NCBI GenBank assembly: GCA_965644295.1
Contig: CBFFRP010000352.1
Coordinates: 124,001 to 188,000, forward strand
Reading direction: 5' to 3'
DNA: 64,000 nucleotides
DNA from: Paraphysomonas bandaiensis
Taxonomy: Eukaryota; Protista; Chrysophyceae
This document shows, one piece after another, positions 8,107 through 56,732 of the stretch. The position numbers and the translations under genes were made by a program. The notes beneath the pieces were generated by a model. It ran no database searches. It was not told the DNA's origin and saw only the letters and a list, made by a program, of their open reading frames with translations. How positions within the stretch are numbered: the stretch's first letter is position 1; each line of letters opens with the position of its first letter.

Positions 8107-9482
8107 GAACGTAGAACACAAGAGATCAAAGCAACTGGACCTACACTGACTACGGCATTTATATAGCTGACGCCGCCGCCAGTGGCGATTGGAAGACACT
8201 AGACAGAGTGCTCGGAGCCTCCAACTACAGTGTTGTCACAACTGACGCTACGCACATTCTTCACCACGGGTCAATGGCACTGGCGAAGATACGATACACA
8301 CCTCCTCACAGACCTCGGTCCCATGCTAGGAAACGTCACAGATCTCCACCACCAGTGGGACCTCCATCAATACACCCTCCGACGAGATAGCATGTACGCT
8401 GCGCAAACGCAGCGGAACAAGGCTCCCACACAAGCTCCATCCTCTCCGTACCCATAACTCCTCCAAACACTACATCTCCCTCGCAGAGCGTATACGCGAG
8501 ACGGCATACGTATGGGACAAATCCTACGCGATGGGAAGAAACCGGGCCAAAGGAAGAACTGGGCATGATCACACAACGGCTTCCACATGCACAGATTGTA
8601 TATACCCCACAGACAACATGGCGCACATGCTTCTAACCTGCACTCACCCTGACATCATTCACATACGTGAAGATGTCCACCAAGCACACCACAATAAGCT
8701 TGTTGACAAACTTCGCACATGCACGCTCCCCCATCCCTGGTTTTACACCGCCATAATCAAACTAGCCAAAGCCGCATGGAACTCAAACACCCCCCAGGTT
8801 GAGCGCTACTGGACCGGTCACATTACTGCCACACAATTGGCCGACGCATTCGGACGCCATATATCCAGCTCACTGCTCGAGCATCAGTTTCACGCCCTCA
8901 AAAAATCCATCACCTCTATCCTGCTCCCCCTATATGATGGAGGGCTCCGCATGCTTCGAAATAGGGGACTCAGACACCACAACGCAGACACGGCACCGGC
9001 AACACCAGTCACGACACACTCACAGCAACGCCAGTCCCAGGATACTCACCCGACACCAAAAATACTCCAGCTACTCCAGGCGACATCCACCCCAAGAATT
9101 ATACCCTCTGCAAGAGTCCAAACCCGACAGAGGCAAGCGCAACCACTCCGGAAACAACTCCTCCTTACTTGCGGCCGAAACCCCACCTCCACAACCAGCA
9201 CCATCTCCACCACCGACTTACACTCTCATATACATCTCGCCCCATTCACCCCTCACATAATCCATGGCACAGGCCCGCCAGACACATTGCCCAAAGGTAG
9301 ACCCCCTGACTAACCTCATTACAAGGGACGGTTGCACCATGGTGCTCGAGGCGATGCACAAGCAGTCCCGAGACGGTTGCCCGCCACTAGTAGTATATAG
9401 CAAATCCAGTTATTAGTTAGTCTATAGATATAAACTAGTTTCTGTACACAACCGTTCTCATGTAATAATCAGGCTTTCCTAT
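8107..9482 (+). mobile_element. 5'-truncated, frameshifted non-LTR retrotransposon (relative of the 49-56 kb element) with 14-bp TSD
   Basis: Translates to GIYIADAAA..DW..LDRVLG, GQWHWR, GRNRAK, CTDC..HMLLTC, PQVERYWTG, PKGRPPD*, all matching the C-terminus of ORF 49049-55999. 3' UTR GGTTGCACCATGGTGCT..GCACAAGCAG. Flanked by direct repeat ATGGCGTATGATTA at 8093-8106 and 9483-9496. Confidence 0.9.
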
Positions 9483-9705
9483 ATGGCGTATGATTAATAG
9501 AAAGTATTCAGTCGTATAGCTTTACTTGTTTCTCGTATGACTTTGAACTAACTTCTGCTCCCTCTTGAAATGAGTTAACATAAATCATTTTATATATCAG
9601 TACTACAAAAAGATTTTAGCTTGCATTCAAATGACGAAGGGTCAGAGCAAATAAAAGAGAACAAGATATATCAAGTGAACATCATTGTAATTGTAATATC
9701 GAGAC

Positions 9706-9878
9706 CGAAGGTGGTTGCACCTTGCTTGGTGCTTGCGGTGATGCACAAGCAGCCAGCTTTTGTAGCGTTAAATAGTAGGATATCAGAGTTAAGTGCTAGT
9801 TAGTTAAATTGTAATGCTACAAGTTCTGACTTTCTTACACACCTATGCTAATAATAAGACATTCACTATTCACTGCTA
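9706..9878 (+). mobile_element. LINE/SINE 3'-tail-only copy
   Basis: GGTGGTTGCACCTTG..GGTGCTTGCGGTGATGCACAAGCAG..CGTTAAATAGTAGGATA..TAATAATAAGACATTCACTA matches 56058-56243 and 20845-20966. Confidence 0.8.
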
Positions 9879-14594: not shown

Positions 14595-16139
14595 ATGGTG
14601 CATATCGAATACAAAGTTCTTCCCCCGAGTAGAATATTTGAGAGCATTGCTGCAGTCAACGATACTGATCAATGCAATACTTTTTATAGGGTTGGCACAT
14701 GTGGTCTTGAAATCGAAAAAGCTTCAGACACAGGCCTTGTTCCAACTCTGAAAGAGTATTGCGATAAGTTAGCATCCTCTTCATCACAATGGTTGGCTAA
14801 TGAAGGGGGCGCTATTAGCGCTTCCATTAATGGAGATATTGTTGGCATAGCAGTGTATCGCCAAAGTTCACCAGGTCGTCACGCTCAGCTATTGCTTATA
14901 CAGGTGAACAGTAGCTGCCGCAGACGAGGGGTGGGTCGAAGTATGCTTGAGCGCGTGGCAGATATATTCCGGTCGGAAGGGGAATCCTCGTTGCTGGTGT
15001 CCTCACGACCTTGCACTGAAGCTGTCGACTTCTTTACAGCCCAAGGATTTCGCTTTGTACGGGTAGAAAGCGAACGTAGTGACCCGTTGGACATACCATT
15101 GGTGCTTCCGCTGCAGTCTAGTCGTCTGCGGTGGTGCATTTTGGGCACGAGTTTCATTTCTGAACTAATGGTGGAGGCTATCCGTGGATCAGTCAATGGG
15201 GAAGTATGGAGTGTGGCAGGACGATCTATAAAGAATCTTACAGCTTTTGCAGAGAGACATAATATATCAGTTCGACACCAGGACTACGAATCGGCAATAG
15301 TGGATTCTGTCGTGGATGTTGTGTATATTGGTCTCCCAACCTACATGCATGCGGAGTGGGTACAGCGGTGTGCTCTTGCTGGCAAGCACATCGTCTGTGA
15401 AAAATCATTTGCTGTCAACATGCAACAGGCTGAGGCAGCACTTGACGTGGTTCGACAGAGTGGAGTCTTTTGCATGGAGGCGCAAATGTACCGGTGTCAT
15501 CCTATTGTACTTCGACTTCTAGAACTACTAAAGGAAAAACCACTGGGAGCGGCTGTCTCTGTTTCCCTCGTCTTTTCTGCACCCATAGTCACTCTTTTCA
15601 ACAGGATTGCAGGGGGAAGTATTCTTGACTTGGGGTGTTATCTTGTCTCTCTTGCTCGGATTTTGTTTGGGGAACCGGTGGGAGTGTCAGGAAGTGGAAC
15701 ATTGGTCCAGCCATCACCAGAACGACTTGACGCAGGGGACAGTCCATTCGACTCTGAGTCAGTGGCAACATTAGATATGCCAGGAGGGGTAACAGCTACA
15801 CTAAGAGCCTGTAATAACGAAGACTTAAGTGTCTGTTGCTCGATTAATTGTGAAGATGGTGTTATAGAGCTCTCCAACCTCTGGGACAACTCTCATCCAG
15901 ATGAAATTATAGTTAAGCGGTCATGTGGGAGTATTTATCGCATTCCAGTGCCGTTGCGGAAAAACACCAACTTTTACACTGCCCAGGTTGATGCAGTTAA
16001 CACAGCCGTTCAGCATGGTCGCTATGAGGCTTATTTTCCCGCGATGTCGTGGCAGGATTCCGTTAATAATATGTCTGTATTGGACAAGTGGAGGACCGCT
16101 ATTGGGCTGAAGTATAATTTAGAGACTCGTATCAAATAG
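14595..16139 (+). CDS. GNAT acetyltransferase - Gfo/Idh/MocA oxidoreductase fusion, intronless
   Basis: N-terminal GNAT motif A (VNSSCRRRGVGRSML). C-terminal LRWCILGTSFIS, VDVVYIGLPTYMH, GKHIVCEKS, GGSILDLGCY typical of Gfo/Idh/MocA. Confidence 0.85.
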   Translation: MVHIEYKVLPPSRIFESIAAVNDTDQCNTFYRVGTCGLEIEKASDTGLVPTLKEYCDKLASSSSQWLANEGGAISASINGDIVGIAVYRQSSPGRHAQLLLIQVNSSCRRRGVGRSMLERVADIFRSEGESSLLVSSRPCTEAVDFFTAQGFRFVRVESERSDPLDIPLVLPLQSSRLRWCILGTSFISELMVEAIRGSVNGEVWSVAGRSIKNLTAFAERHNISVRHQDYESAIVDSVVDVVYIGLPTYMHAEWVQRCALAGKHIVCEKSFAVNMQQAEAALDVVRQSGVFCMEAQMYRCHPIVLRLLELLKEKPLGAAVSVSLVFSAPIVTLFNRIAGGSILDLGCYLVSLARILFGEPVGVSGSGTLVQPSPERLDAGDSPFDSESVATLDMPGGVTATLRACNNEDLSVCCSINCEDGVIELSNLWDNSHPDEIIVKRSCGSIYRIPVPLRKNTNFYTAQVDAVNTAVQHGRYEAYFPAMSWQDSVNNMSVLDKWRTAIGLKYNLETRIK

Positions 16140-20494: not shown

Positions 20495-20966
20495 CTCTCA
20501 ACAAAGTCGGACTCGCACCTTTTCGTGGTGTATAAGTACCGGAGATATTTCTCCGGGAAACTAACGTGAGCTGCATATAATTGACAGCAGATATTGTTCT
20601 GCCCATTCATAGCCTTATGCTTGTGTAGTACAAGGGACACTAATAAGTCACTTGTGTAGACGTCTTTGGGCCTTGACGAATAAGCAGGAATCCGGAAAAG
20701 AGCCCACCTCAAGGGCATCCGGGACAGGGCTGCCTACTAAAGTTAAGTATTCACCTGAAGGAATCAAAAATCCTGAAGGAAGCAGATGTCAGGTATATCA
20801 ACAGTCTGCTTGCTCACTGCGTTTGTTTTGAGCGGTAAAGCGAAAGAGGTGGCACCCTGGTGATTGTGGTAATACACAAGCAGCCTTCGTAGACTTAAAT
20901 AGTAGGATATCAGAGTGAAGCACTAACTCTTAAACGCCTATTTTTAATAATAAGACATTCACTGCT
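20495..20966 (+). mobile_element. SINE-like structured repeat, most complete copy (head + body + LINE-type 3' tail)
   Basis: 5' part shared with copies at 7351, 28075, 34642 and 44540. 3' part (GGCACCCTGGTGATTG..ACACAAGCAG..TTAAATAGTAGGATA..AACGCCTA..TAATAATAAGACATTCACT) shared with the LINE 3' UTR at 56058-56243. Confidence 0.85.
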
Positions 20967-21083: not shown

Positions 21084-22514
21084 CTACAACCTCTTAGAGT
21101 ACTCATAAAAATCACAATACGGATTTCTTTCAGGGTGATTCAATACAATGTGACTAATGGAGGCGGTCTCCAGGGATTGTAAAATGAGTGTATCCCAATA
21201 CGGCTGCGTAAGAATCTCGTACTTCCACTCTTTTGCATAAGTAGTAAAGCACAGATAGGCCTCCTCCAGTAGAGATAGGGAGACTGTAAGGAGGCTGTGT
21301 ACTACCAAAACCGGCAGTCGAGAATATAACCTGTCTAGGCCAGGGGCGCTCTCCACAATAGGAAAAGATCCCATGATAAGCGCCTCCCACAGTCTATATG
21401 TATCTGCCCCTAGACCGAAAGGACATATGACAAAGCGTGAAGAAGCTAAACTTAAGAGATAAGCCTGGCGAGCATTTCGCACTTCCCCAGGAGGCAAACT
21501 CAAACTCTTATTGGGATACATATTGCCCTCACCGAATTCTGTTCTATAGTACGCTGCCACGGCTTTTCTGTAGTACCTTGGGTTGAAGTTAACTAATAAA
21601 AGTCGTTCTTTTTTGCAAAGAGACGCGCTACGATTCATGATATTGAGAGTGGCTACCACTTCCCGCGCCATGTGTGGGCGCACACCGATGGGGACGCTCA
21701 AAACTTTTTCGTGGTTAAAGGTTTGCTGCTGCGTGGTGACCAGAAGGAGTATACGAGGATGGTCTAAAAAGGTTACCAATGAATCTATACTAGAGTTGCA
21801 TGATACTAGACTGTCCTTCAGCGCGTTAAAACGCTTACACGAATTCGTGAAACGATCATAATTGAATGCAAGACAAGTCCTTCCGGGCAGATCGCTACTC
21901 ATATAGCCACAATTCTCATCGAACCGACTGGTAAGCAAAACAGGAACAGGTAATGCATCTAGCGATCCTGCTCGGTTAAGCAAAAAACATAGTCTGTGTC
22001 CAAGCACATAGCGCAGTACATCTCCTCCTTTATTCGCTTTCAGCAACTCGGCCATATGAATAGCCAGGTCAGCAGTGGTTACTATAGGAGGTCTTCTAGC
22101 GAAGAACATACCCTCTCGTTCTCTTCCCCATACAGATAAAGGTACCGTGCTTTTGTATCCCTCGTATTCCTGAAGCGGATAGTCGTCTGAGTAGTGTGAT
22201 AGAAATTTAATTCTATGATCAGTGTCCGAGTGAGACACAGCATAACTGTAATTTCTATCCGACGACATGCGCCCTTGATACATTATGTCATCTGGATGTC
22301 GGATACGCTGCCAAACACTCGGAGGAACACAATATTTTGACTTCAGTGTGAACCCTGACTCTAAAATTTCTTTTTTTGTTTTTACATGAGATAAGTTCCT
22401 GTGTCTCTGGTGAATGATGAAGTATGGTAGAAGGGATATACACACTAAAAGTAACAACCGTGACAATACGCGATATGAGTACATTTGGTCTTTTCCACCT
22501 CCTGTATAAATCAT
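21084..22514 (-). CDS. Exostosin-like (GT47-related) glycosyltransferase, type II membrane protein
   Basis: N-terminal TM anchor; C-terminal SSRFVICPFGLGADTYRLWEALIMGSFPIV signature. Confidence 0.8.
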   Translation of the reverse strand: MIYTGGGKDQMYSYRVLSRLLLLVCISLLPYFIIHQRHRNLSHVKTKKEILESGFTLKSKYCVPPSVWQRIRHPDDIMYQGRMSSDRNYSYAVSHSDTDHRIKFLSHYSDDYPLQEYEGYKSTVPLSVWGREREGMFFARRPPIVTTADLAIHMAELLKANKGGDVLRYVLGHRLCFLLNRAGSLDALPVPVLLTSRFDENCGYMSSDLPGRTCLAFNYDRFTNSCKRFNALKDSLVSCNSSIDSLVTFLDHPRILLLVTTQQQTFNHEKVLSVPIGVRPHMAREVVATLNIMNRSASLCKKERLLLVNFNPRYYRKAVAAYYRTEFGEGNMYPNKSLSLPPGEVRNARQAYLLSLASSRFVICPFGLGADTYRLWEALIMGSFPIVESAPGLDRLYSRLPVLVVHSLLTVSLSLLEEAYLCFTTYAKEWKYEILTQPYWDTLILQSLETASISHIVLNHPERNPYCDFYEYSKRL

Positions 22515-43129: not shown

Positions 43130-43747
43130 ACTAGTCCTGTTAGCTCGCTGTAGTACATGTCTGGTTTTTATAGAAACAACTACAAATTGTGATATAAAAC
43201 CTATAGAAAAAGCATTTCCTTGTTGTCGCTCCTGCATTGTAAATTAATAGGCCTATCCTGACTGATGTTATGAGATTTTGCACTCCAGGCACATTTCTAG
43301 GCCATAGCACCTAATCAACGGCAATCTGAACAGTCTGAATGGTGAAGTAGTATTTAATTCATCTAGTGTTTACTGTTAGTACTGGAAGTAGTGATCCCAC
43401 TTAATCATGAATTATATGTTATAACAATATAGGCCATCTAAATTACGTTCAATCCCGCTCGCTGAAGTGCGACGCACACACATACGGATCATTGCAGATA
43501 AGTGAGTGAAGGTTCAAAAACTTCTTTTAATAAACATTTGTGATTTACCTGCACATGTTACGGAGAATATTCAGGCCTATCACACAGAGTATGGCATAGG
43601 CCTATGACACAAAACATTCTCGTAATACTTTCTAATATGACATAAACGCAGGACAAGGGATTTAGATTTTTATATATGATATTACCAGGGCCATCTGGAG
43701 AAGGCCAGAGCAAATTGGCTTGTGACTGATGAAAATGAATTCATTCA

Positions 43748-43918
43748 AGAGCGAAAGTGGTTGCACCTTGGTGCTTGCGGTGACGCACCAGAAGATATCG
43801 TGGCGCCAAATACGTGGGGTATCTGAGTTAGGCACTAGTTAGTTAAATTTCAATGCTACATTAGTTCTGACTCTTATACGCATATTGCTAATAGTAAGAC
43901 ATGATTCATTCACGACTA
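43748..43918 (+). mobile_element. LINE/SINE 3'-tail-only copy
   Basis: AGAGCGAAAGTGGTTGCACCTTGGTGCTTGCGGTGACGCAC..ATTGCTAATAGTAAGACAT matches the SINE and LINE tails. Confidence 0.8.
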
Positions 43919-48681: not shown

Positions 48682-48979
48682 GATGATGTTGAAAGGAAAC
48701 GATATACGGGAAATACAGTCAAGTATACAGCAAGTCCACTCGGATACCCAGTGTATGATATCAGCAGACAGCATCTCATAACTATGATCATAAGAGCTCC
48801 TGATTATTAGCCCACAAGATGCTATTCCAGCCTACCAGCCTTCAGTATCAAGATAGATATCTGTATCCCTCTTCAGTGCTACTTCCTTCTTCATGAGAGC
48901 ATGGATAAGACATAAGAATATCTCATTTTTACATGGGAACGGTTGTGACTAGAAGCTATGTATATATCTATCCTGTTTT

Positions 48980-51900
48980 CTACAACACCAGACCTCCAGA
49001 CAGAGCACCAATATCCTCTGGACTTCTGAGCCGTCAACTGTACCACCTATGCTACATGAGCACAGAGAGCAACAGGAACAGAGGGAAGTAATTGCAGTCT
49101 CCTTGTCACCGAGAGCTCGACGTCAACTACGACAGATGAACCCCACGGACCGTCGACAACTCAGGCTCCATATGTGCGACATGAGCAGAGTCTACCGCCT
49201 CACCCTCAGACCCTCAGCCCTTCGCACACAACAACATATCCCTAGTGATGGGTACTGCGCATACAGCACACTCTATCATCTGCACATTCTTGCTTCAAGC
49301 AGGCGACACACTCGCTCCTGTCTGAAATTAGACCTCAAACAACGCAAGGACCGTCACACGCTAGCATCTTTCATAAATACATTAGGCACCCAAGCGTTCG
49401 ACATAATGCAACGGGAGTGCATGGCCCATCACACACTTCAGCCACTACGACATAAGTTAGATCACGCACAGGCCGCACTTTTAATACCTACTAAAACAAC
49501 ATACACTACGGAAGACGACATAACTCACTGGCTCTCAGTGCGAGAAGTCCACCTTTTAGCCTCTACTATCAACCCCTGCACGACGTGGGCGCAAAATGGT
49601 AATTACCTCAGCATTGTAGGCATCCCTACTGACAAAGTAGCTTATAACATCGCATGGAAGGTGGACGAACTTAGGGACGCTATTCGTGATAACTACTACC
49701 ATGTCATACTACAAGATGCTCACTACTTCCTCTTAGACCCTGCCGGTCTTTCTACTGCCCTAGACAACGCCCTACTATCTCTTGAAAACACCTTGGCCAC
49801 CAGTATACTCTCAACGGCTGACCCCATCGCTCCACCTACACTCCCCGCGGACTCAATCACGAACAACAATAGGACATCAAAGATGACCAGCACCAGAACA
49901 ACCTCGTCAAGCAGCACCAAGTTAGCACGAACAAATCGACAGATTCTGCAGGCTTCAACCCCTGGAGCACTACCATCGCACAAGAAGATGCAGTTGAAAC
50001 ACGCCCAAACTGCGTTGACAAGTCGATGCCAGCCAACCCGGAAAGCCAAAAAGGTCGTAAATTACGATGAAAGTGACCAACCAACGAACCTTCACAACTC
50101 ACACCCAACCACGACCACACGAACGATCAGACCAACTCCAGCACTAGATACCACCGGCTGGGACAGGGACTGGTCAAGAAAGTTCTACATTGCGTACGCC
50201 GATAACACTGCCAAAGGACTATCCCTTTATGCGAAGAACACATTCCCAGCAGACGTCATCATTGCTGAGTACAAAGGCAAACGCTATCCACTAACAAAGA
50301 TGAGTCAGTCTACAAGGCGTTCTGATTACATAGTTCAAGACAGTACTGGTACCTTCGCAATAGATGGCTTTGACCAAGTCCGACAATGTGTAACATGCGA
50401 AGCTGGGTATATTAATGACCCCCTAGCCACAAATATGGCTAATGTCAAGTTTGTCACGAAAAATAAACGCCTCTATGTCCGTACAATACGTTCCATTGCT
50501 AAGGATGAAGAACTTCTCATCAACTACGGACATCATTATTGGTGTGATCAACGCTGGCCACTTGAGATATTAATCCAAGCCAGGGCTGCGTACGACAGCG
50601 ACATAGGCGGTGCCAATATAGCAGTATGGGACAGACTCCTTGCAGACAAGAGTGGAACTCCTACAGAGACCTCCAGCAGCATCCCCAAGGATCCCTCGGG
50701 AGCAGCCATGGGACTCCGACTCTCCACATGGAACACAAATGGCAATCCGGCATCACACACAGGTAAAGCCCAAGCTATCATCCGACACTTTAAGCGGCAA
50801 AAATTGGACGTGCTCCTATTACAGGATGTCCGTCTAACAGAAACTCAGGCCAACTTCTTCACGCGTATCATCGAAGATGCACTCCAGGGAACAAGAATAT
50901 GCCTCTTCCTCAGCAAGCAGCCAAAACTGACTTCAAGAGACCCACTAATGGGGGGTACAGTAGTCATAATCAGCGAATACTGGAAGCGCCGTCTCGCCTT
51001 CACAAAGGCTGACTTTACGGGACTTGGTTTAGTGAGCCGACTAGAGTTCAAAACGTCGGTGGCGCACACCCTAGTACTAATAAGCGTCTATCTACCCCCG
51101 AAGCCATCCACGCCAGGCACTTGCACATTATGGAGCAAATTGACCAAGCTAGGGAGAGCGTCCCGTGGTATCTGTACTGCTGACCCCTACAAGCTCCTAT
51201 GCAACATCCTTACGAAATGGGTCACTAAAGCCAGAGCCAAGGACCATACTGTCATTGTCGCCGGCGACTTCAATGGCTCCATGGAGACAAATCCTAAAGG
51301 CAGAGACATACGACCACTTGCCGACAAACTCCAACTGGCTGCACCACTCCATGAGCTTCTCCTACCCAGGAAAACATATCATACCTTCCACAGATTAGAC
51401 AAAGGAATATCGCGGATCGATCATATTCTACACACGCCGTTACCTCCGAACATGTCTGTTACGGACACTGGCTGCCTTGACTCCCCCTCATTACTCGCAG
51501 CAGCCTTCGATCATCGACCGGTCTGGGTCGGTTTCACCGTACCAGTCAATCTTGACCCTCGACCACCTGAGTCGCACCTCCGAATCCCCCCCCGTCTCAA
51601 TGTAAACCCGAAGGACTCCAAGGAAGTACAGGCATACACCGCAAGACTCCTCCAACTTCATGCACAACTACCACATTTCGACAACGGATCGACTACCATA
51701 CTCCCTCCTGAGGTGGCAGCCAACAGACTAGCGGCCATCCATCACATAACCCTCCAGGCTTCGCTTGAGGCGAAGCGTCCTGCATGTACACATAGCACAC
51801 GCCTACACGAACGTTGTCAGCGCACACGCTCAAAGTTCAAGAATGGCTTTTCCCCGGAAATGAGAGTAATACAGGAAGGAATGCTCATGGTTTTGCGGAT

Positions 51901-54900
51901 TATCCAAAAGATGTTCAATTCTGCTGGATACAAACGGCATGGATGGCGCGGCCCCCCGGCAACCACCCCCACCCACGAAATCATCACTGCATGGTTCGCC
52001 CGATGGGACTCCTATCTCAGGAGTTCTCAGGGTCACATCAAAGGCATATCGGACATCAACTTCTGGTGCAGCCACCGCAACGCGGACCCACGAGTAATCC
52101 TGGGTTGGAACGAAAAGCAAGCCACCAAGAAAAACCTTCTCCGAATTGCCTTGCGACTGAGAGGACTTCTTCATGGAAGAGCCAGGACAGAAATGCGGAC
52201 TAGACTCACGGCTCGCACCAAGCAGATGGAGGCACTGCTACAGCAGAAAAGACTTCAAGCAATTCTTCAGAAAATTGGTCTCAAGGTCAAAACACCACTC
52301 CGACTTACCACGGTGAAAACAACGGACGGACACATCCTCACAACGCCGCAAGACATTCATGAAGGCATTAATGCGCACTTCCGTGAACATCATGCCAAAC
52401 CTCCTGGACTTGACCCTGTAGCACAACAGCTCCAGGATGACCCTACATGGTGGAAATCACTTCTTGATCCGGGCTCAGCGACATGCCAGGAACCACTCCA
52501 CCCCCGCTCGAAAATTCCTCTTCCCCTGCAACTGGGGTTACGACGGGCCCTTTGTACCAAGACCACTCCGGCCATGGCAGCCACACTCAAATCTACTCTT
52601 GCAAAAGACATCACCCAGGATGAATTCTACTGCACACTTCACTCTCTCTCCTTCAACCGCGCGCCTGGACCCTCAATGGTCTCCTCCAACATGGTCAAAT
52701 CCTGGCCACCGGTAGTTCAGCGAGAGGCTTACATCCTCACCAGATCTCTCTGGAAACATAAACATGTGCCCATTTGGTGGAGAGACAGGGTAATGTCTCC
52801 CATTCTCAAGAAACCAGGAGAATCCTCCCTCACTAATCTCCGACCGATTGGTCTGCTTGAAGTCAGTAGGAAAATATTAACAAGGATAATCACTCATAGA
52901 ATTCTTACCGTATGGGAGGAACAGAAAGTTTTGCATCCGTCCCAGCATGGTTATCGCTGGAGGAACGGGACGGACACAGCGATACTACGGGTACTCGCGG
53001 CTGCAGAAGAAGCAAGACGAAAAGGCGACCAGCATATATGTACACTCTGGGACTTCAAGAAGGCCTTCGACTCAATTGCGCCTAACCTCATGCGTCTCGC
53101 GTGGGCACGACTGGGCGTTCCGGACGATGTAGTTGACTGGTTTGGCAACTTAGATGCCGGCGGTCTAACATTTCCCTGGACACCATTCATGGCAAACAAC
53201 ATAGAGCCACGTTCTCTCCTTGACCTCCTGTCCGCAGACGGCCACTTCATTGCACTATTCAGTCTGGGTTTCGAAGCCGAAAGGGGTATCACCCAAGGGG
53301 GCACAGAATCCACATGCGCCTGGGTGGCACTCTACGACATCCTTCTCACGTGGCTGGACATTGAACTGTCAACAACGAGTCCAACGTTACCAACTATTCA
53401 ACTCACGACTCCGACTACAGGCGAAATAAAGATCTCCTTCGCGGATGATCTTAACACAATAGCTAAATCCATACACGCTGCCCAACTCATTGCCCAACAA
53501 ATATCTGCGTTCTGCGTACTTTCGGGAATGGAACTCTCTATCCCCAAAGTAGTTTGCACAGTGTTTCCGATCCTACAGGATTCCAACAAGTCCTCCGACC
53601 CCATTGGCTACATCATTCTCTACGACTGGTCATGGCGCCCACACCCAGTCCCTATCCAAACATCACTAGAGTCGATACATTACCTCGGAGCAGACCTTCC
53701 TCTCACAATCACAGACAAGGCCTCCCATGACTGGTGTCTAAAATACCTGAAAGTCGTGACCACACACCTAGGGATCAAACAGGCCTCAGCCGGCTGTAAA
53801 GTCATGGTTATCGAGACCCAAATCATACCGACTTTGCTCTATAGAGCCACCAAAGCTTCATGGCCGCTACACTGGTACAGAGAAATTGACGCTGCTTGCG
53901 CAACCCTCTACAGAAAGGCCCTCAGTCTAGGCCCTGGATACCCCACGGAACTAATCTACCTCTCACTCAAGCACAACGGATTAGGTATGAAACGTTTCTC
54001 AGACTCAGCGCAGGAGCAAAAATGGGGATCTCTACAGCGCGCAATAACCCTCGGGGGAGAAGCAGGTCAAGCAGCACATTTTCTACTCACTCAGACAACA
54101 GAGCCACAGCCCCAATACCACCACTATGTTCTCAGCCTCAGGGAATGGGGAACGGAATTGGGCCTTACCCTTCAGGAACCTGAGCCCCCCGAACCACAGG
54201 ATGAACACATGCTGACCAACCTAAAACAAGAACTCGGCCTTAATAGTGTCCAACCAGATACTTTCAAGGCTATCTTCACAGATGGATCATACACAGCCAG
54301 TGCGCTCTCCACTCGTCGCCTCACTCATGTCAATCCGCGAACCCGATGGACACACCGAGGAGGTGCAGCGGTCGTCTACTTACCCCCAGAAAATGCCTGG
54401 GAAGATGGTACAACCACAATACTACGACTAGATACACCCTTTCGTGACGTGCCCGGTTTGGACTCATACGCATATGAACTCATAGGCACAGCCATGGGGC
54501 TTATACTCTCAACACGTATTCCCGAACACATACGAAGCCACACAGACTGTCAGGCAGTGTGCACCCGCACTGAGGAAGCACTCTCCACAAGACGCAGAGC
54601 TCTCGGTCACCGTGCAAAAGGGGTACTACTCGAAAGCATCGCAGCCAGCAGAGATTGCAAACGACAGGTGACCTGGGTGAGGTCTCATCCCGAACGACGT
54701 ACCACAGATGAAACGGAGTGGACGTTTGAGGACAAGGGCATCTATATTGCGGACGCAGTTGCGGGTGAAGACTGGCATGAAGTCGATCGCATCCTTGGAA
54801 AAAATAACTACACTGTCTGCACAATTGCGATTGACAGTGCCATCGAACGCTTACTAACTGCTGGATTATGGCACTGGCGTATGCACAGTACAAGACGGCC

Positions 54901-56243
54901 ATACTACTCTAGCCCACTCCTTACTAATTTCCAGGATCTCTGCGACCTAAGGACACTTGAGAACTACACTTCAACCAGAGATCAACGCTACGGACACAAT
55001 CCTGATCGAGCGCCTGGCTACTGGACCAATAGCGGAGTACACCTCCCGCGCAAACTAGCTCAAGCGGATGGCAGTGCATCCAAAGACAAACTCAGCTCAA
55101 ATCTACGCCAAAGAATACTCAACACGGCACTGACATGGGACAAATCTTTCTGCATAGGGAGGAACCGGGCCAAAACCAAACAGGGGCTTGACCTGACCAA
55201 AGCCGCATGCTCTGACTGCGGGTTTCGACTAGATTCCCTAAAACATATGTGCCTCGACTGCACACATGAATCCATCACCCAAATAAGGGAAACTGCATTT
55301 CAATCGCATAAAAATGTGCTCCACGAAATACAGAGAACTCAGACCTTACCCAACTGGATCACATCTGCACTACGGAGACTCTCCAGCAGAGCCTGGAATC
55401 CCTCCATCCCACAGGTCGAGAGATACTGGACTGGAACCATCACAGCAGCCCAACTGGAAACGGTCTTCGAAGATGCCATACACAACCACCTGACGGCACA
55501 CAGTCTACGGAACCTAGAAACAGCGGTTATTAATCTCCTGCAACCGCTTTACACTGCAGCGAAGCTTATGCTACAGGATCGCGGTTGTCGCTATATCACC
55601 ATGTCCAAAAGGCCGCCCAGACTACTCCCGAGACCCCGTCCGAAACGCAGTCAGTCAAGACAACGTCCGAGAGTCCTTCGACTACTAGGGGTCCAACGAA
55701 GACCCCCCACAGCGTCCCCGACTCCAGACACACGTGCACACCTCACAGGTCCTACCCGACAGAGCACTGGACTGCCCAGACCTCCACAACGCCGACGGCT
55801 TCGACAACTCTATCTACACCCGCGGCCCCACAGGAGCACAGTAACACAGACTACAAACCCAACTCCTCCTCCCAACAATCCCCACCACTCTCAACCCACA
55901 CATCTGGAACTAGGTGCACTCAGGACCCTAATCCAGAACGCTGAGCCCCCTCCAACACCAATGGAGACCCATCCCAAAGGGAGACCCCCAGATCAATAGC
56001 GCCGGTGAGTCCACGGACACACGATAAAGGCGAATTTCATATCACACAAAAGAACGGAAGTGGTTGCACCTTGGTGCTTGCGGCGACGCACAAGCAGCTT
56101 TCGTAGCGTTAAATAGTAGGATAAAAGAGTTTGTATTGATTAGTTACGGGTAGTGGTCTAACTAGTATGACTAGCATTCTTCTAGCCACTAATTGATGCA
56201 AGGTCTCAACGCCTATTGCTAAATAATCAGACATTCACTACTA
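48980..56243 (+). mobile_element. Non-LTR retrotransposon with intact single ORF and 3' UTR ending in ATTCACTACTA
   Basis: C/A-rich composition begins ~48980; ORF 49049-55999; 3' UTR shared with dispersed repeats. 5' boundary and TSD not resolved. Confidence 0.9.
49049..55999 (+). CDS. Retrotransposon polyprotein: OTU-like protease, SET, APE endonuclease, reverse transcriptase, RNase H, CCHC finger
   Basis: IPSDGYCAY..AHY (~49235-49730); SET KGLSLYA/AEYKG/YIND..N/EELLINYGHHYW (~50180-50545); APE STWNTNG/LQD/SVYLP/GDFN/SRIDH/DHRPV (~50714-51530); RT APGP/RPIGLL/QHGY/DFKKAFDS/GITQG/FADD/YLG (~52650-53700); RNase H FTDGS/AYEL/TDC/WVRSH/IADA (~54270-54765); CSDC-x8-H-x4-C (55208-55261). Confidence 0.95.
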   Translation: MLHEHREQQEQREVIAVSLSPRARRQLRQMNPTDRRQLRLHMCDMSRVYRLTLRPSALRTQQHIPSDGYCAYSTLYHLHILASSRRHTRSCLKLDLKQRKDRHTLASFINTLGTQAFDIMQRECMAHHTLQPLRHKLDHAQAALLIPTKTTYTTEDDITHWLSVREVHLLASTINPCTTWAQNGNYLSIVGIPTDKVAYNIAWKVDELRDAIRDNYYHVILQDAHYFLLDPAGLSTALDNALLSLENTLATSILSTADPIAPPTLPADSITNNNRTSKMTSTRTTSSSSTKLARTNRQILQASTPGALPSHKKMQLKHAQTALTSRCQPTRKAKKVVNYDESDQPTNLHNSHPTTTTRTIRPTPALDTTGWDRDWSRKFYIAYADNTAKGLSLYAKNTFPADVIIAEYKGKRYPLTKMSQSTRRSDYIVQDSTGTFAIDGFDQVRQCVTCEAGYINDPLATNMANVKFVTKNKRLYVRTIRSIAKDEELLINYGHHYWCDQRWPLEILIQARAAYDSDIGGANIAVWDRLLADKSGTPTETSSSIPKDPSGAAMGLRLSTWNTNGNPASHTGKAQAIIRHFKRQKLDVLLLQDVRLTETQANFFTRIIEDALQGTRICLFLSKQPKLTSRDPLMGGTVVIISEYWKRRLAFTKADFTGLGLVSRLEFKTSVAHTLVLISVYLPPKPSTPGTCTLWSKLTKLGRASRGICTADPYKLLCNILTKWVTKARAKDHTVIVAGDFNGSMETNPKGRDIRPLADKLQLAAPLHELLLPRKTYHTFHRLDKGISRIDHILHTPLPPNMSVTDTGCLDSPSLLAAAFDHRPVWVGFTVPVNLDPRPPESHLRIPPRLNVNPKDSKEVQAYTARLLQLHAQLPHFDNGSTTILPPEVAANRLAAIHHITLQASLEAKRPACTHSTRLHERCQRTRSKFKNGFSPEMRVIQEGMLMVLRIIQKMFNSAGYKRHGWRGPPATTPTHEIITAWFARWDSYLRSSQGHIKGISDINFWCSHRNADPRVILGWNEKQATKKNLLRIALRLRGLLHGRARTEMRTRLTARTKQMEALLQQKRLQAILQKIGLKVKTPLRLTTVKTTDGHILTTPQDIHEGINAHFREHHAKPPGLDPVAQQLQDDPTWWKSLLDPGSATCQEPLHPRSKIPLPLQLGLRRALCTKTTPAMAATLKSTLAKDITQDEFYCTLHSLSFNRAPGPSMVSSNMVKSWPPVVQREAYILTRSLWKHKHVPIWWRDRVMSPILKKPGESSLTNLRPIGLLEVSRKILTRIITHRILTVWEEQKVLHPSQHGYRWRNGTDTAILRVLAAAEEARRKGDQHICTLWDFKKAFDSIAPNLMRLAWARLGVPDDVVDWFGNLDAGGLTFPWTPFMANNIEPRSLLDLLSADGHFIALFSLGFEAERGITQGGTESTCAWVALYDILLTWLDIELSTTSPTLPTIQLTTPTTGEIKISFADDLNTIAKSIHAAQLIAQQISAFCVLSGMELSIPKVVCTVFPILQDSNKSSDPIGYIILYDWSWRPHPVPIQTSLESIHYLGADLPLTITDKASHDWCLKYLKVVTTHLGIKQASAGCKVMVIETQIIPTLLYRATKASWPLHWYREIDAACATLYRKALSLGPGYPTELIYLSLKHNGLGMKRFSDSAQEQKWGSLQRAITLGGEAGQAAHFLLTQTTEPQPQYHHYVLSLREWGTELGLTLQEPEPPEPQDEHMLTNLKQELGLNSVQPDTFKAIFTDGSYTASALSTRRLTHVNPRTRWTHRGGAAVVYLPPENAWEDGTTTILRLDTPFRDVPGLDSYAYELIGTAMGLILSTRIPEHIRSHTDCQAVCTRTEEALSTRRRALGHRAKGVLLESIAASRDCKRQVTWVRSHPERRTTDETEWTFEDKGIYIADAVAGEDWHEVDRILGKNNYTVCTIAIDSAIERLLTAGLWHWRMHSTRRPYYSSPLLTNFQDLCDLRTLENYTSTRDQRYGHNPDRAPGYWTNSGVHLPRKLAQADGSASKDKLSSNLRQRILNTALTWDKSFCIGRNRAKTKQGLDLTKAACSDCGFRLDSLKHMCLDCTHESITQIRETAFQSHKNVLHEIQRTQTLPNWITSALRRLSSRAWNPSIPQVERYWTGTITAAQLETVFEDAIHNHLTAHSLRNLETAVINLLQPLYTAAKLMLQDRGCRYITMSKRPPRLLPRPRPKRSQSRQRPRVLRLLGVQRRPPTASPTPDTRAHLTGPTRQSTGLPRPPQRRRLRQLYLHPRPHRSTVTQTTNPTPPPNNPHHSQPTHLELGALRTLIQNAEPPPTPMETHPKGRPPDQ

Positions 56244-56254
56244 TAGTCTTACTA

Positions 56255-56732
56255 ACTTGGTTTGTCATATTCTCTGATTGGTGATTCTACAGTCTATGCA
56301 TGCGGCAGCTGTTGTCTGGTCAATCCCGGTTTTGCTTTTGACTCGATTTCTTCCCATTGCATAGAATTTGTTCCAGACGTATACCGTTTCGCGTATGCGG
56401 TCTGGGAAAGAGATGTAGTGTTAGGGGAGTTATGGGTGCGGATTGGATGGAGTTTGTGTGGGAGCCTCGTTCCACTGCGGGTCCAATACTGCGGGTCTCG
56501 CTGCGTTTGTGTAGCGTACGTGCTGTCTCGCCTGAGGATGTATTGATGTAGGTCCCATTGGTGGTTGGGGTCTGTAATATCTCCTAGCTTTGGACCAATG
56601 TCTGTGAGTAAGTTCGCATCGGATCTTCGACGGTGCCATTAACCCGTGGTGAGGAATTCTTCCAGTATGTGCGTTACATCAACTGCAGAGTGCTGTGTCC
56701 CTGGGGGACATTAGTTGGTCCACTTCCCCATA
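56255..56732 (-). mobile_element. Inverted, decayed internal fragment of the same LINE family
   Basis: Minus strand reads ETVYVWNKFYAMGRNRVK..ACIDC, matching ETAYVWDKSYAMGRNRAK..TCTDC of the 8107-9482 copy. Confidence 0.8.

Follow-up and report, generated by a model that had tools for sequence, protein, structure and literature searches.

Retrotransposons that encode a SET domain have been on record since 2016, when Lescot et al. (ISME J, PMC5029228) reported Dualen-1_GCr, a long interspersed nuclear element (LINE) of the cryptophyte Geminigera cryophila with a SET domain, a C48 peptidase, an APE-type endonuclease, a reverse transcriptase (RT), an RNase H, a CCHC motif and a restriction-like endonuclease (RLE). 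Dualen-1_GCr is deposited in Repbase and was related by its authors to the longest RT open reading frame (ORF) of the Tara Oceans data, and a further cryptophyte Dualen LINE, Dualen-5_CCu, is found in the same paper (PMC5029228). The survey of Grau-Bove et al. (2022) lists SET as one of the chromatin families that occur in fusions with transposable elements; its text gives counts only and describes no SET-LINE family. SET accessory genes are known in the HarbingerS, oomycete MuDR, Helitron and red-algal Plavaka PAG2 DNA transposons. In the literature we found no paper devoted to SET-bearing LINEs. Here we analyze such a LINE in the chrysophyte Paraphysomonas bandaiensis, within a window of 64,000 nucleotides (GenBank assembly GCA_965644295.1, contig CBFFRP010000352.1, positions 124,001 to 188,000 of the forward strand; all nucleotide positions given below are those of the window). 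An active family of APE-type LINEs has left a very young copy, truncated at its 5' end, at 48968-56242 of the window, and the polyprotein of this copy contains an in-frame SET domain under purifying selection. An initial annotation of the window, made from the sequence alone, had put this architecture forward as undescribed, a claim that the 2016 record of SET, APE and RT in Dualen-1_GCr takes away.

The domain order of the polyprotein is N-terminal region, OTU-like module, SET, APE, RT, RNase H-like region, CCHC knuckle and C-terminal domain. As the initial annotation had proposed, the SET domain lies in frame ahead of the endonuclease in an uninterrupted ORF of 2316 aa, all on the forward strand: the SET core occupies aa 390-494 (50216..50530), the APE-type endonuclease aa 560-797 (50726..51439; Pfam Exo_endo_phos, 39 bits; motifs GDFN and SRIDH) and the RT aa 1254-1547 (52808..53689; Pfam RVT_1, 56 bits; motif FADD). 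The three Pfam domains of the ORF, SET, Exo_endo_phos and RVT_1, all exceed their curated thresholds. The interval first assigned to SET, 50180-50545, corresponds to aa 378-499 and covers the core. The gap of about 55 aa that had been given between SET and APE was too wide: the SET core is followed by a conserved, cysteine-free post-SET extension with two predicted helices (aa 495-535, 50531..50653), and since the conserved helices continue to about aa 535, the true linker is about 20-25 aa long. APE is followed by RT within the one ORF, as in APE-type non-LTR (lacking long terminal repeats) elements, and the best solved relative of the RT is human LINE-1 ORF2p (E 2e-8).

The identification of the SET core rests on Pfam, alignment, AlphaFold2 (AF2), Foldseek and VIA. 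The profile search and the structure prediction, both of which the initial annotation had named as checks on its SET assignment, bear that assignment out. With Pfam PF00856 the domain reaches 35.0 bits (E 2e-8), where the cut-off is 22.4, with profile positions 1-105 of 105 covered, and the threshold is also passed in two further lineages of the same genome, B and C, and in metagenome relatives. The AF2 model (pLDDT 85, pTM 0.80) has a SET fold with two C-terminal helices. Its fold matches are MLL3/MLL1, SET7/9, SETD8 (SET8), ASH1L, EZH2 and PR domains (Foldseek probability 1.0, VIA Z 13-14.7), with Z about 14 against MLL1, SET8 and SET7/9, and the SET7/9 alignments extend to about residue 160 of the model. 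By sequence, the solved structures nearest to it are those of KMT2D and KMT2C (E about 3e-3), and Y493 of the LINE protein is aligned with the DY tyrosine of KMT2D. The likeness to the chlorovirus enzyme vSET that the initial annotation had seen does not hold up: vSET (1n3j) matches only query residues 101-133 in phmmer (E 0.064) and does not figure among the 50 best fold matches, and we reject a special kinship to it, the best sequence and fold matches being KMT2/MLL, SET8 and SET7/9.

We aligned the SET domains of 31 relatives, at about 30% identity. The alignment defines a subfamily signature, AG.G.FA, EY.G, SDY, IDA, AGYINDPL, N..F, ATR.I...EEL...YG..YW, WPL..L..A..AY and W..L. Five residues, N456, N465, Y493, Y497 and W498, are invariant in the 31 relatives, and G390, Y408, G410, Y427, D439, D457 and A511 are conserved in at least 90% of them. 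Both the catalytic Tyr of the ELxxxY motif (Y493) and the Tyr of the YxG motif (Y408) are present. The motifs quoted when the domain was first noticed are all found, namely KGLSLYA (with G390), EYKG (Y408, G410), GYINDPL..N (N456, D457, N465) and LINYG..YW (Y493, Y497, W498), and the domain is, as had been noted, free of pre-SET and post-SET cysteine clusters. The post-SET extension carries YW and WPLEIL.QAR.AY, then W..L.

The SET domain is not peculiar to the window copy. A six-frame search of the 62.5-Mb assembly gave 95 SET matches, most of them inside open frames of 1000-3700 aa, and these fall into identity classes of 99-100% (about ten), 94-96% (about twenty) and further groups at about 66% and about 48%. 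Pfam confirmed the order SET, APE, RT in lineage B (the 66% group; loci L031 and L032) and in lineage C (the 48% group; L033-L036), and tblastn aligned lineage B (68-70% identity) and lineage C (41-44%) with the window protein in unbroken order, beginning at aa 11-15 and ending at aa 2315. Recurrence of the SET-APE-RT linkage, on which the initial annotation had wished to see its reading tested, is thus documented by dozens of copies in three diverged lineages. Between lineage A, that of the window copy, and lineages B and C, the amino acid identity of SET is 0.68 and 0.50, compared with 0.74 and 0.49 for APE, 0.74 and 0.53 for RT, and 0.52-0.53 and 0.28-0.37 for the flanking linkers; SET is about as conserved as APE and RT, and above the linkers, in both comparisons. 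The ratio of nonsynonymous to synonymous substitution rates (dN/dS) of SET, with synonymous sites saturated, is 0.28 for A1, the family of the window copy, versus A2, 0.15 for A versus B and 0.24 for A versus C, and is therefore below 1 throughout (0.15-0.28), the range that the initial annotation had named in its proposed check. The conservation of SET and its dN/dS across the lineages identify it as an old, selected part of the LINE. It is an integral domain under purifying selection, and at least three lineages of this genome have inherited it along with their APE and RT.

Relatives outside this genome place the same domains together. A homologue search limited to the SET region of the long protein returned none; relatives were found by an exhaustive SET search and by an APE-RT search. 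The exhaustive search, in which HMMER compared a 167-aa SET segment with 1.84 billion representatives, gave 239 matches, the best at 39% identity. Several of these are metagenome fragments, P0001 and P0005 among them, that keep the order of the window protein over SET and APE, aa 60-677 of P0005 aligning with aa 371-962 of the window protein at 32% identity (E 3e-83). The APE-RT query retrieved four proteins of 2100-2800 aa from ENA and JGI metagenomes (P0165, P0166, P0169 and P0170), all with SET, Exo_endo_phos and RVT_1 and all 32-37% identical to the window protein over APE-RT. Three of them align with it in one piece at 29-35% identity, P0165 and P0166 from SET to near the C-terminus and P0169 from SET to the end of RT. 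Two longer proteins, P0023 and P0045 (3500-3900 aa), have a SET domain of the same subfamily but downstream of RT, and are 25% identical to the window protein over APE-RT. Their layout is RNase H, APE, RT, SET plus OTU, and C48/Ulp1, with SET before OTU in P0023 and OTU before SET in P0045; the P0023 locus is on metagenome contig L048 (1454-13225, +).

The SET subfamily is also seen outside LINEs. Ty3/Gypsy elements of the same genome have a related SET domain between RNase H and integrase (L037:3217-7998, -; L040:2907-5255, +; L039:4013-7531, -; L038:2-5143, -), and in the domain alignment these Gypsy SETs show the NDPL and YG..YW signatures at 21-24% identity to the LINE SET. One genome thus holds two retrotransposon classes with a SET domain of the same subfamily. 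Among the metagenome matches are a Gypsy element with SET after the integrase (P0126), a Ulp1 (C48) protease with SET (P0057) and a protein in which SET, in two stretches, is fused to a protein kinase (P0066).

The element itself extends from 48968 to 56242 (+, 7275 bp), its limits being set by blastn against other copies and by the junction sequences. It consists of a leader of 81 nt before the first ATG, the ORF of 2316 aa, which starts at an internal Met and has no stops (49049..55999, +), and a 3' untranslated region (UTR) of 243 nt (56000..56242, +). The 3' terminus has no poly(A) and reads ...CATTCACTACT; from the comparison of LINE copies the 3' end is ...CATTCACTAC(T/C), again without poly(A). 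In blastn comparisons it shares 99.6-99.9% identity with the copies of contigs C433 and C132 and must therefore be very young. Comparison of junctions reveals that the copies on C433, C440 and C132 extend upstream of its start, which shows the window copy to be an insertion truncated at the 5' end; the view of it as an apparently intact, full-length element is rejected. The C433 and C132 copies have in common a further 1426 bp and the 5' terminus, and differ in their flanks. The full ORF of the A1 family is about 2813 aa long, compared with 2316 aa in the window copy, in which no stop interrupts the frame where the truncation lies (open frame of 2348 aa). Because the 5' end of the element is missing, the window copy is probably not an autonomous source copy.

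Other copies document the mode of insertion. The C80 copy is 5'-truncated at the equivalent of window position 49951, and target-site duplications of 11 bp and 7 bp flank the C433 and C80 copies, respectively; the window copy's own junctions have microhomology of only 3-4 bp. The dispersed copies have variable 5' truncation, independent flanks and no long terminal repeats, as LINEs do. Target-site duplications, variable 5' truncation and independent flanks are the hallmarks of target-primed reverse transcription. Fragments of the 3' ends of lineage-C-like LINEs are present in the window at 8118-9310 (+) and 56330-56701 (-), at 51-67% amino acid identity to L033. The second of these lies about 90 bp past the 3' end of the element studied here, and the young copy was therefore inserted beside an older LINE remnant. 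Part of the 3' UTR (about 56050-56131) is matched at 80-85% by short non-coding stretches at 9704-9790, 20841-20916 and 43747-43812.

The architecture raises the question of whether the junction of SET and LINE is real and, if so, what the SET domain does. The junction might result from misassembly, from a chimera confined to one copy, or from a host SET gene lying beside an inserted LINE. The window copy is truncated and adjoins an older LINE fragment, and otherwise such an artefact has only its general possibility to recommend it. It is very hard to credit, given that dozens of independent copies with differing flanks share the junction and that it is found again across three diverged lineages and on metagenome contigs from other sources, and with so many independent copies a chance or misassembly chimera is rejected. 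The reading that we favor, and consider reasonably probable from the alignment and the model, is that the SET domain would be a working lysine methyltransferase, dependent on S-adenosylmethionine (SAM). The domain would be carried to chromatin by the retrotransposition complex, or might be released by the adjoining cysteine-protease-like module, and its substrates, in the vicinity of the integration site or at the site itself, would be histone tails or some other protein of chromatin or of the host. Such methylation may aid integration or bias the chromatin state of the new copies. Two substitutions weigh against a working enzyme. About 90% of the 31 relatives have Asp (D457) where the NH(S/C)xxPN motif calls for His, and the second Gly of the GxG motif is Ser or Ala (GLS or GNA) across the family; with the ND motif and GxS/GxA, cofactor binding could be altered. 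In favor of a shared history of SET and LINE, the SET and RT trees of the eleven elements with both domains are concordant on every supported group, but this agreement is weak evidence because the SET tree is poorly resolved. A predicted complex of the SET domain with SAM and residues 1-45 of this genome's histone H3 scored 0.01, which counts neither for nor against binding.

The same substitutions would suit a non-catalytic SET domain, a reader or pseudo-enzyme that tethers the LINE ribonucleoprotein to histone tails or to a lysine-bearing partner and so steers integration, as chromodomains do. Besides the family-wide ND in the NH motif and GxS/GxA in GxG, this would be in keeping with a weak match to Pfam PRDM2_PR, a branch that includes inactive members, with the PR domains of PRDM3 and PRDM5 among the fold matches (Z 13), and with the position of SET in P0126, for chromoviruses carry their chromodomain after the integrase. 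Yet in a pure binding module Y493, Y408, N456 and N465 would be free to drift, and they are kept over 31 sequences at about 30% identity; moreover, the NH-motif His is missing from PRDM9 as well, which is an active SET enzyme. We regard a purely tethering role as rather unlikely. That every catalytic-position residue is kept over such divergence argues for a working enzyme, though the ND and GxS/GxA substitutions temper that argument. An active enzyme might instead methylate a non-histone target, either its own polyprotein or a host factor of silencing, ubiquitin/SUMO or DNA repair, as part of a host-manipulation cassette with the OTU-like or C48 module. SET is linked to cysteine proteases in the window element, in P0023 and P0045, in P0057 (C48 plus SET) and in Dualen-1_GCr (SET plus C48), in differing orders, and this repeated pairing of the SET subfamily with OTU or C48 suggests a functional cassette. 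SET7/9, which methylates many non-histone proteins, is among the closest folds. The protease modules, however, may do no more than process the polyprotein, and a non-histone target seems to us a little less likely again than the tether. We infer the order of likelihood to be a functional methyltransferase, then a non-catalytic tether, then a non-histone target with protease modules.

A wider hypothesis, to which we give only tentative credence, is that the cysteine-free SET subfamily with the NDPL and YG..YW signatures serves the mobile elements of marine protists as a common weapon, catalytically active and writing a specific histone mark at insertions. LINEs, Ty3/Gypsy elements and Ulp1- or OTU-bearing proteins would then exchange the domain or each inherit it within their own kind, and the mark at new insertions would block host silencing or create a safe chromatin harbor. 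If this were true, no retrotransposon before these would have been shown to write histone methylation on its own account. Transposons are usually viewed as the targets and not the writers of histone methylation. A selected SET domain in deeply diverged LINEs, together with a related Gypsy SET in one genome, offers a natural system in which to ask whether retroelements modify chromatin, and the question is approachable with a confidently folded domain of roughly 190 aa. The value of the present analysis is mainly one of documentation: it supplies evidence of selection, a conserved signature, a predicted structure, environmental relatives and a link to the single-sentence report of 2016.

The remaining parts of the polyprotein are less easily identified. 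The OTU-like, cysteine-protease-like module (49166..49801, +) has an invariant C70 (IPSDGYCAY) and H225 (DAHYF); it has no Pfam match, its AF2 model reaches only pLDDT 68, and the top Foldseek rows of that model are nearly all OTU domains, but weak ones (E 3e-3, TM 0.36-0.50). The RNase H-like region (54266..54823, +) is recognized at motif level only, by a D-E-D-H-D series, D1745 (FTDGS), E1810, D1833, H1880 and D1902, that is invariant across the lineages and has no match to Pfam or PDB profiles. A CCHC-type zinc knuckle (55208..55261, +; C2054, C2057, H2066 and C2071) is followed by a conserved, mostly helical C-terminal domain. Neither the first 384 aa of the protein nor its last 766 aa has a Pfam match, and the same holds for the spacer of aa 818-1251 and the extra N-terminal parts of longer copies. 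Upstream sequence of the longer copies is represented by L045:1-1773 (-) and L046:2-2221 (-). In the full-length A1 copies the extra N-terminal region of about 500 aa, itself without a Pfam match, opens with an IRIRIW ... HFFLD segment that resembles the back half of a second OTU-like module. Upstream, the A2 copy of C440 departs from this: its region includes a short peptide repeated in tandem and may represent read-through of non-coding sequence.

Two other genes of the window deserve mention. At 14595-16139 (+) there is an intronless, bacterial-looking ORF of 514 aa in which a GNAT acetyltransferase is fused to a GFO/IDH/MocA oxidoreductase. At 21084-22514 (-) lies a host gene with an RXYLT1 C-terminal domain, whose closest relatives, metagenome or Logan proteins, are only 50-53% identical, and the protein collection therefore holds no close sequenced relative of the organism.

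Mobile elements with chromatin-related domains of other kinds provide more distant comparisons. The SETs of the HarbingerS, MuDR, Helitron and Plavaka PAG2 DNA transposons resemble that of the window LINE in that a mobile element has its own SET domain, presumably directed at chromatin, but they are separate genes or DNA methylase fusions in cut-and-paste or rolling-circle elements, whereas the window SET shares one reading frame with the rest of a retrotransposon polyprotein. Chromoviruses with chromodomains and the DNA methyltransferase-bearing retrotransposons (de Mendoza et al. 2018) have likewise recruited chromatin machinery into retroelement proteins; what they recruited, unlike the SET of the window LINE, are readers or DNA methyltransferases. 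The Ty3/Gypsy SET of the same genome, in the order RT, RNase H, SET, integrase, belongs to the same subfamily and differs in retrotransposon class and position of insertion. Among solved enzymes, SET7/9, SET8/SETD8, the KMT2/MLL core and vSET share with the window domain the SET fold, a helical C-flank and the lack of zinc clusters. Against solved SETs the window domain aligns at Z 14 with a root-mean-square deviation of 2.2-3.0 Å over 114-138 residues, at only 17-24% identity, and its family is unlike the SET enzymes free of cysteine clusters in its ND motif and in its own YW...WPL..L..A..AY...W..L tail.

The nearest comparison is with Dualen-1_GCr. Both are giant single-ORF LINEs in which SET and a cysteine protease (in the window LINE a cysteine-protease-like module) are listed before APE, followed by RT, RNase H (in the window LINE an RNase H-like region) and CCHC; Dualen-1_GCr was found in marine plankton data. 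Compared by description only, Dualen-1_GCr itself has a C48 (Ulp1) peptidase, an RLE and a length of 5287 aa, whereas the window LINE family has an OTU-like module, no C48 and no detectable RLE, and at about 2800-3000 aa is about half as long. In the alignment of the lineages there is no restriction-like endonuclease motif past the CCHC knuckle, with no invariant Asp or Lys that would fit PD-(D/E)xK, and a PDB profile search with the C-terminal domain, of low sensitivity, found no R2 or RLE chain. The pair of endonucleases that defines Dualen/RandI elements is therefore not seen, this low-sensitivity search having returned no C-terminal RLE, and for want of a second endonuclease we do not file the window LINE under Dualen. 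Set beside the SET-bearing cryptophyte Dualen LINEs by description only, it belongs to the same kind of element. The SET-bearing LINE is a kind of architecture that was already on record and has barely been studied, and the family in P. bandaiensis is a new member of it.

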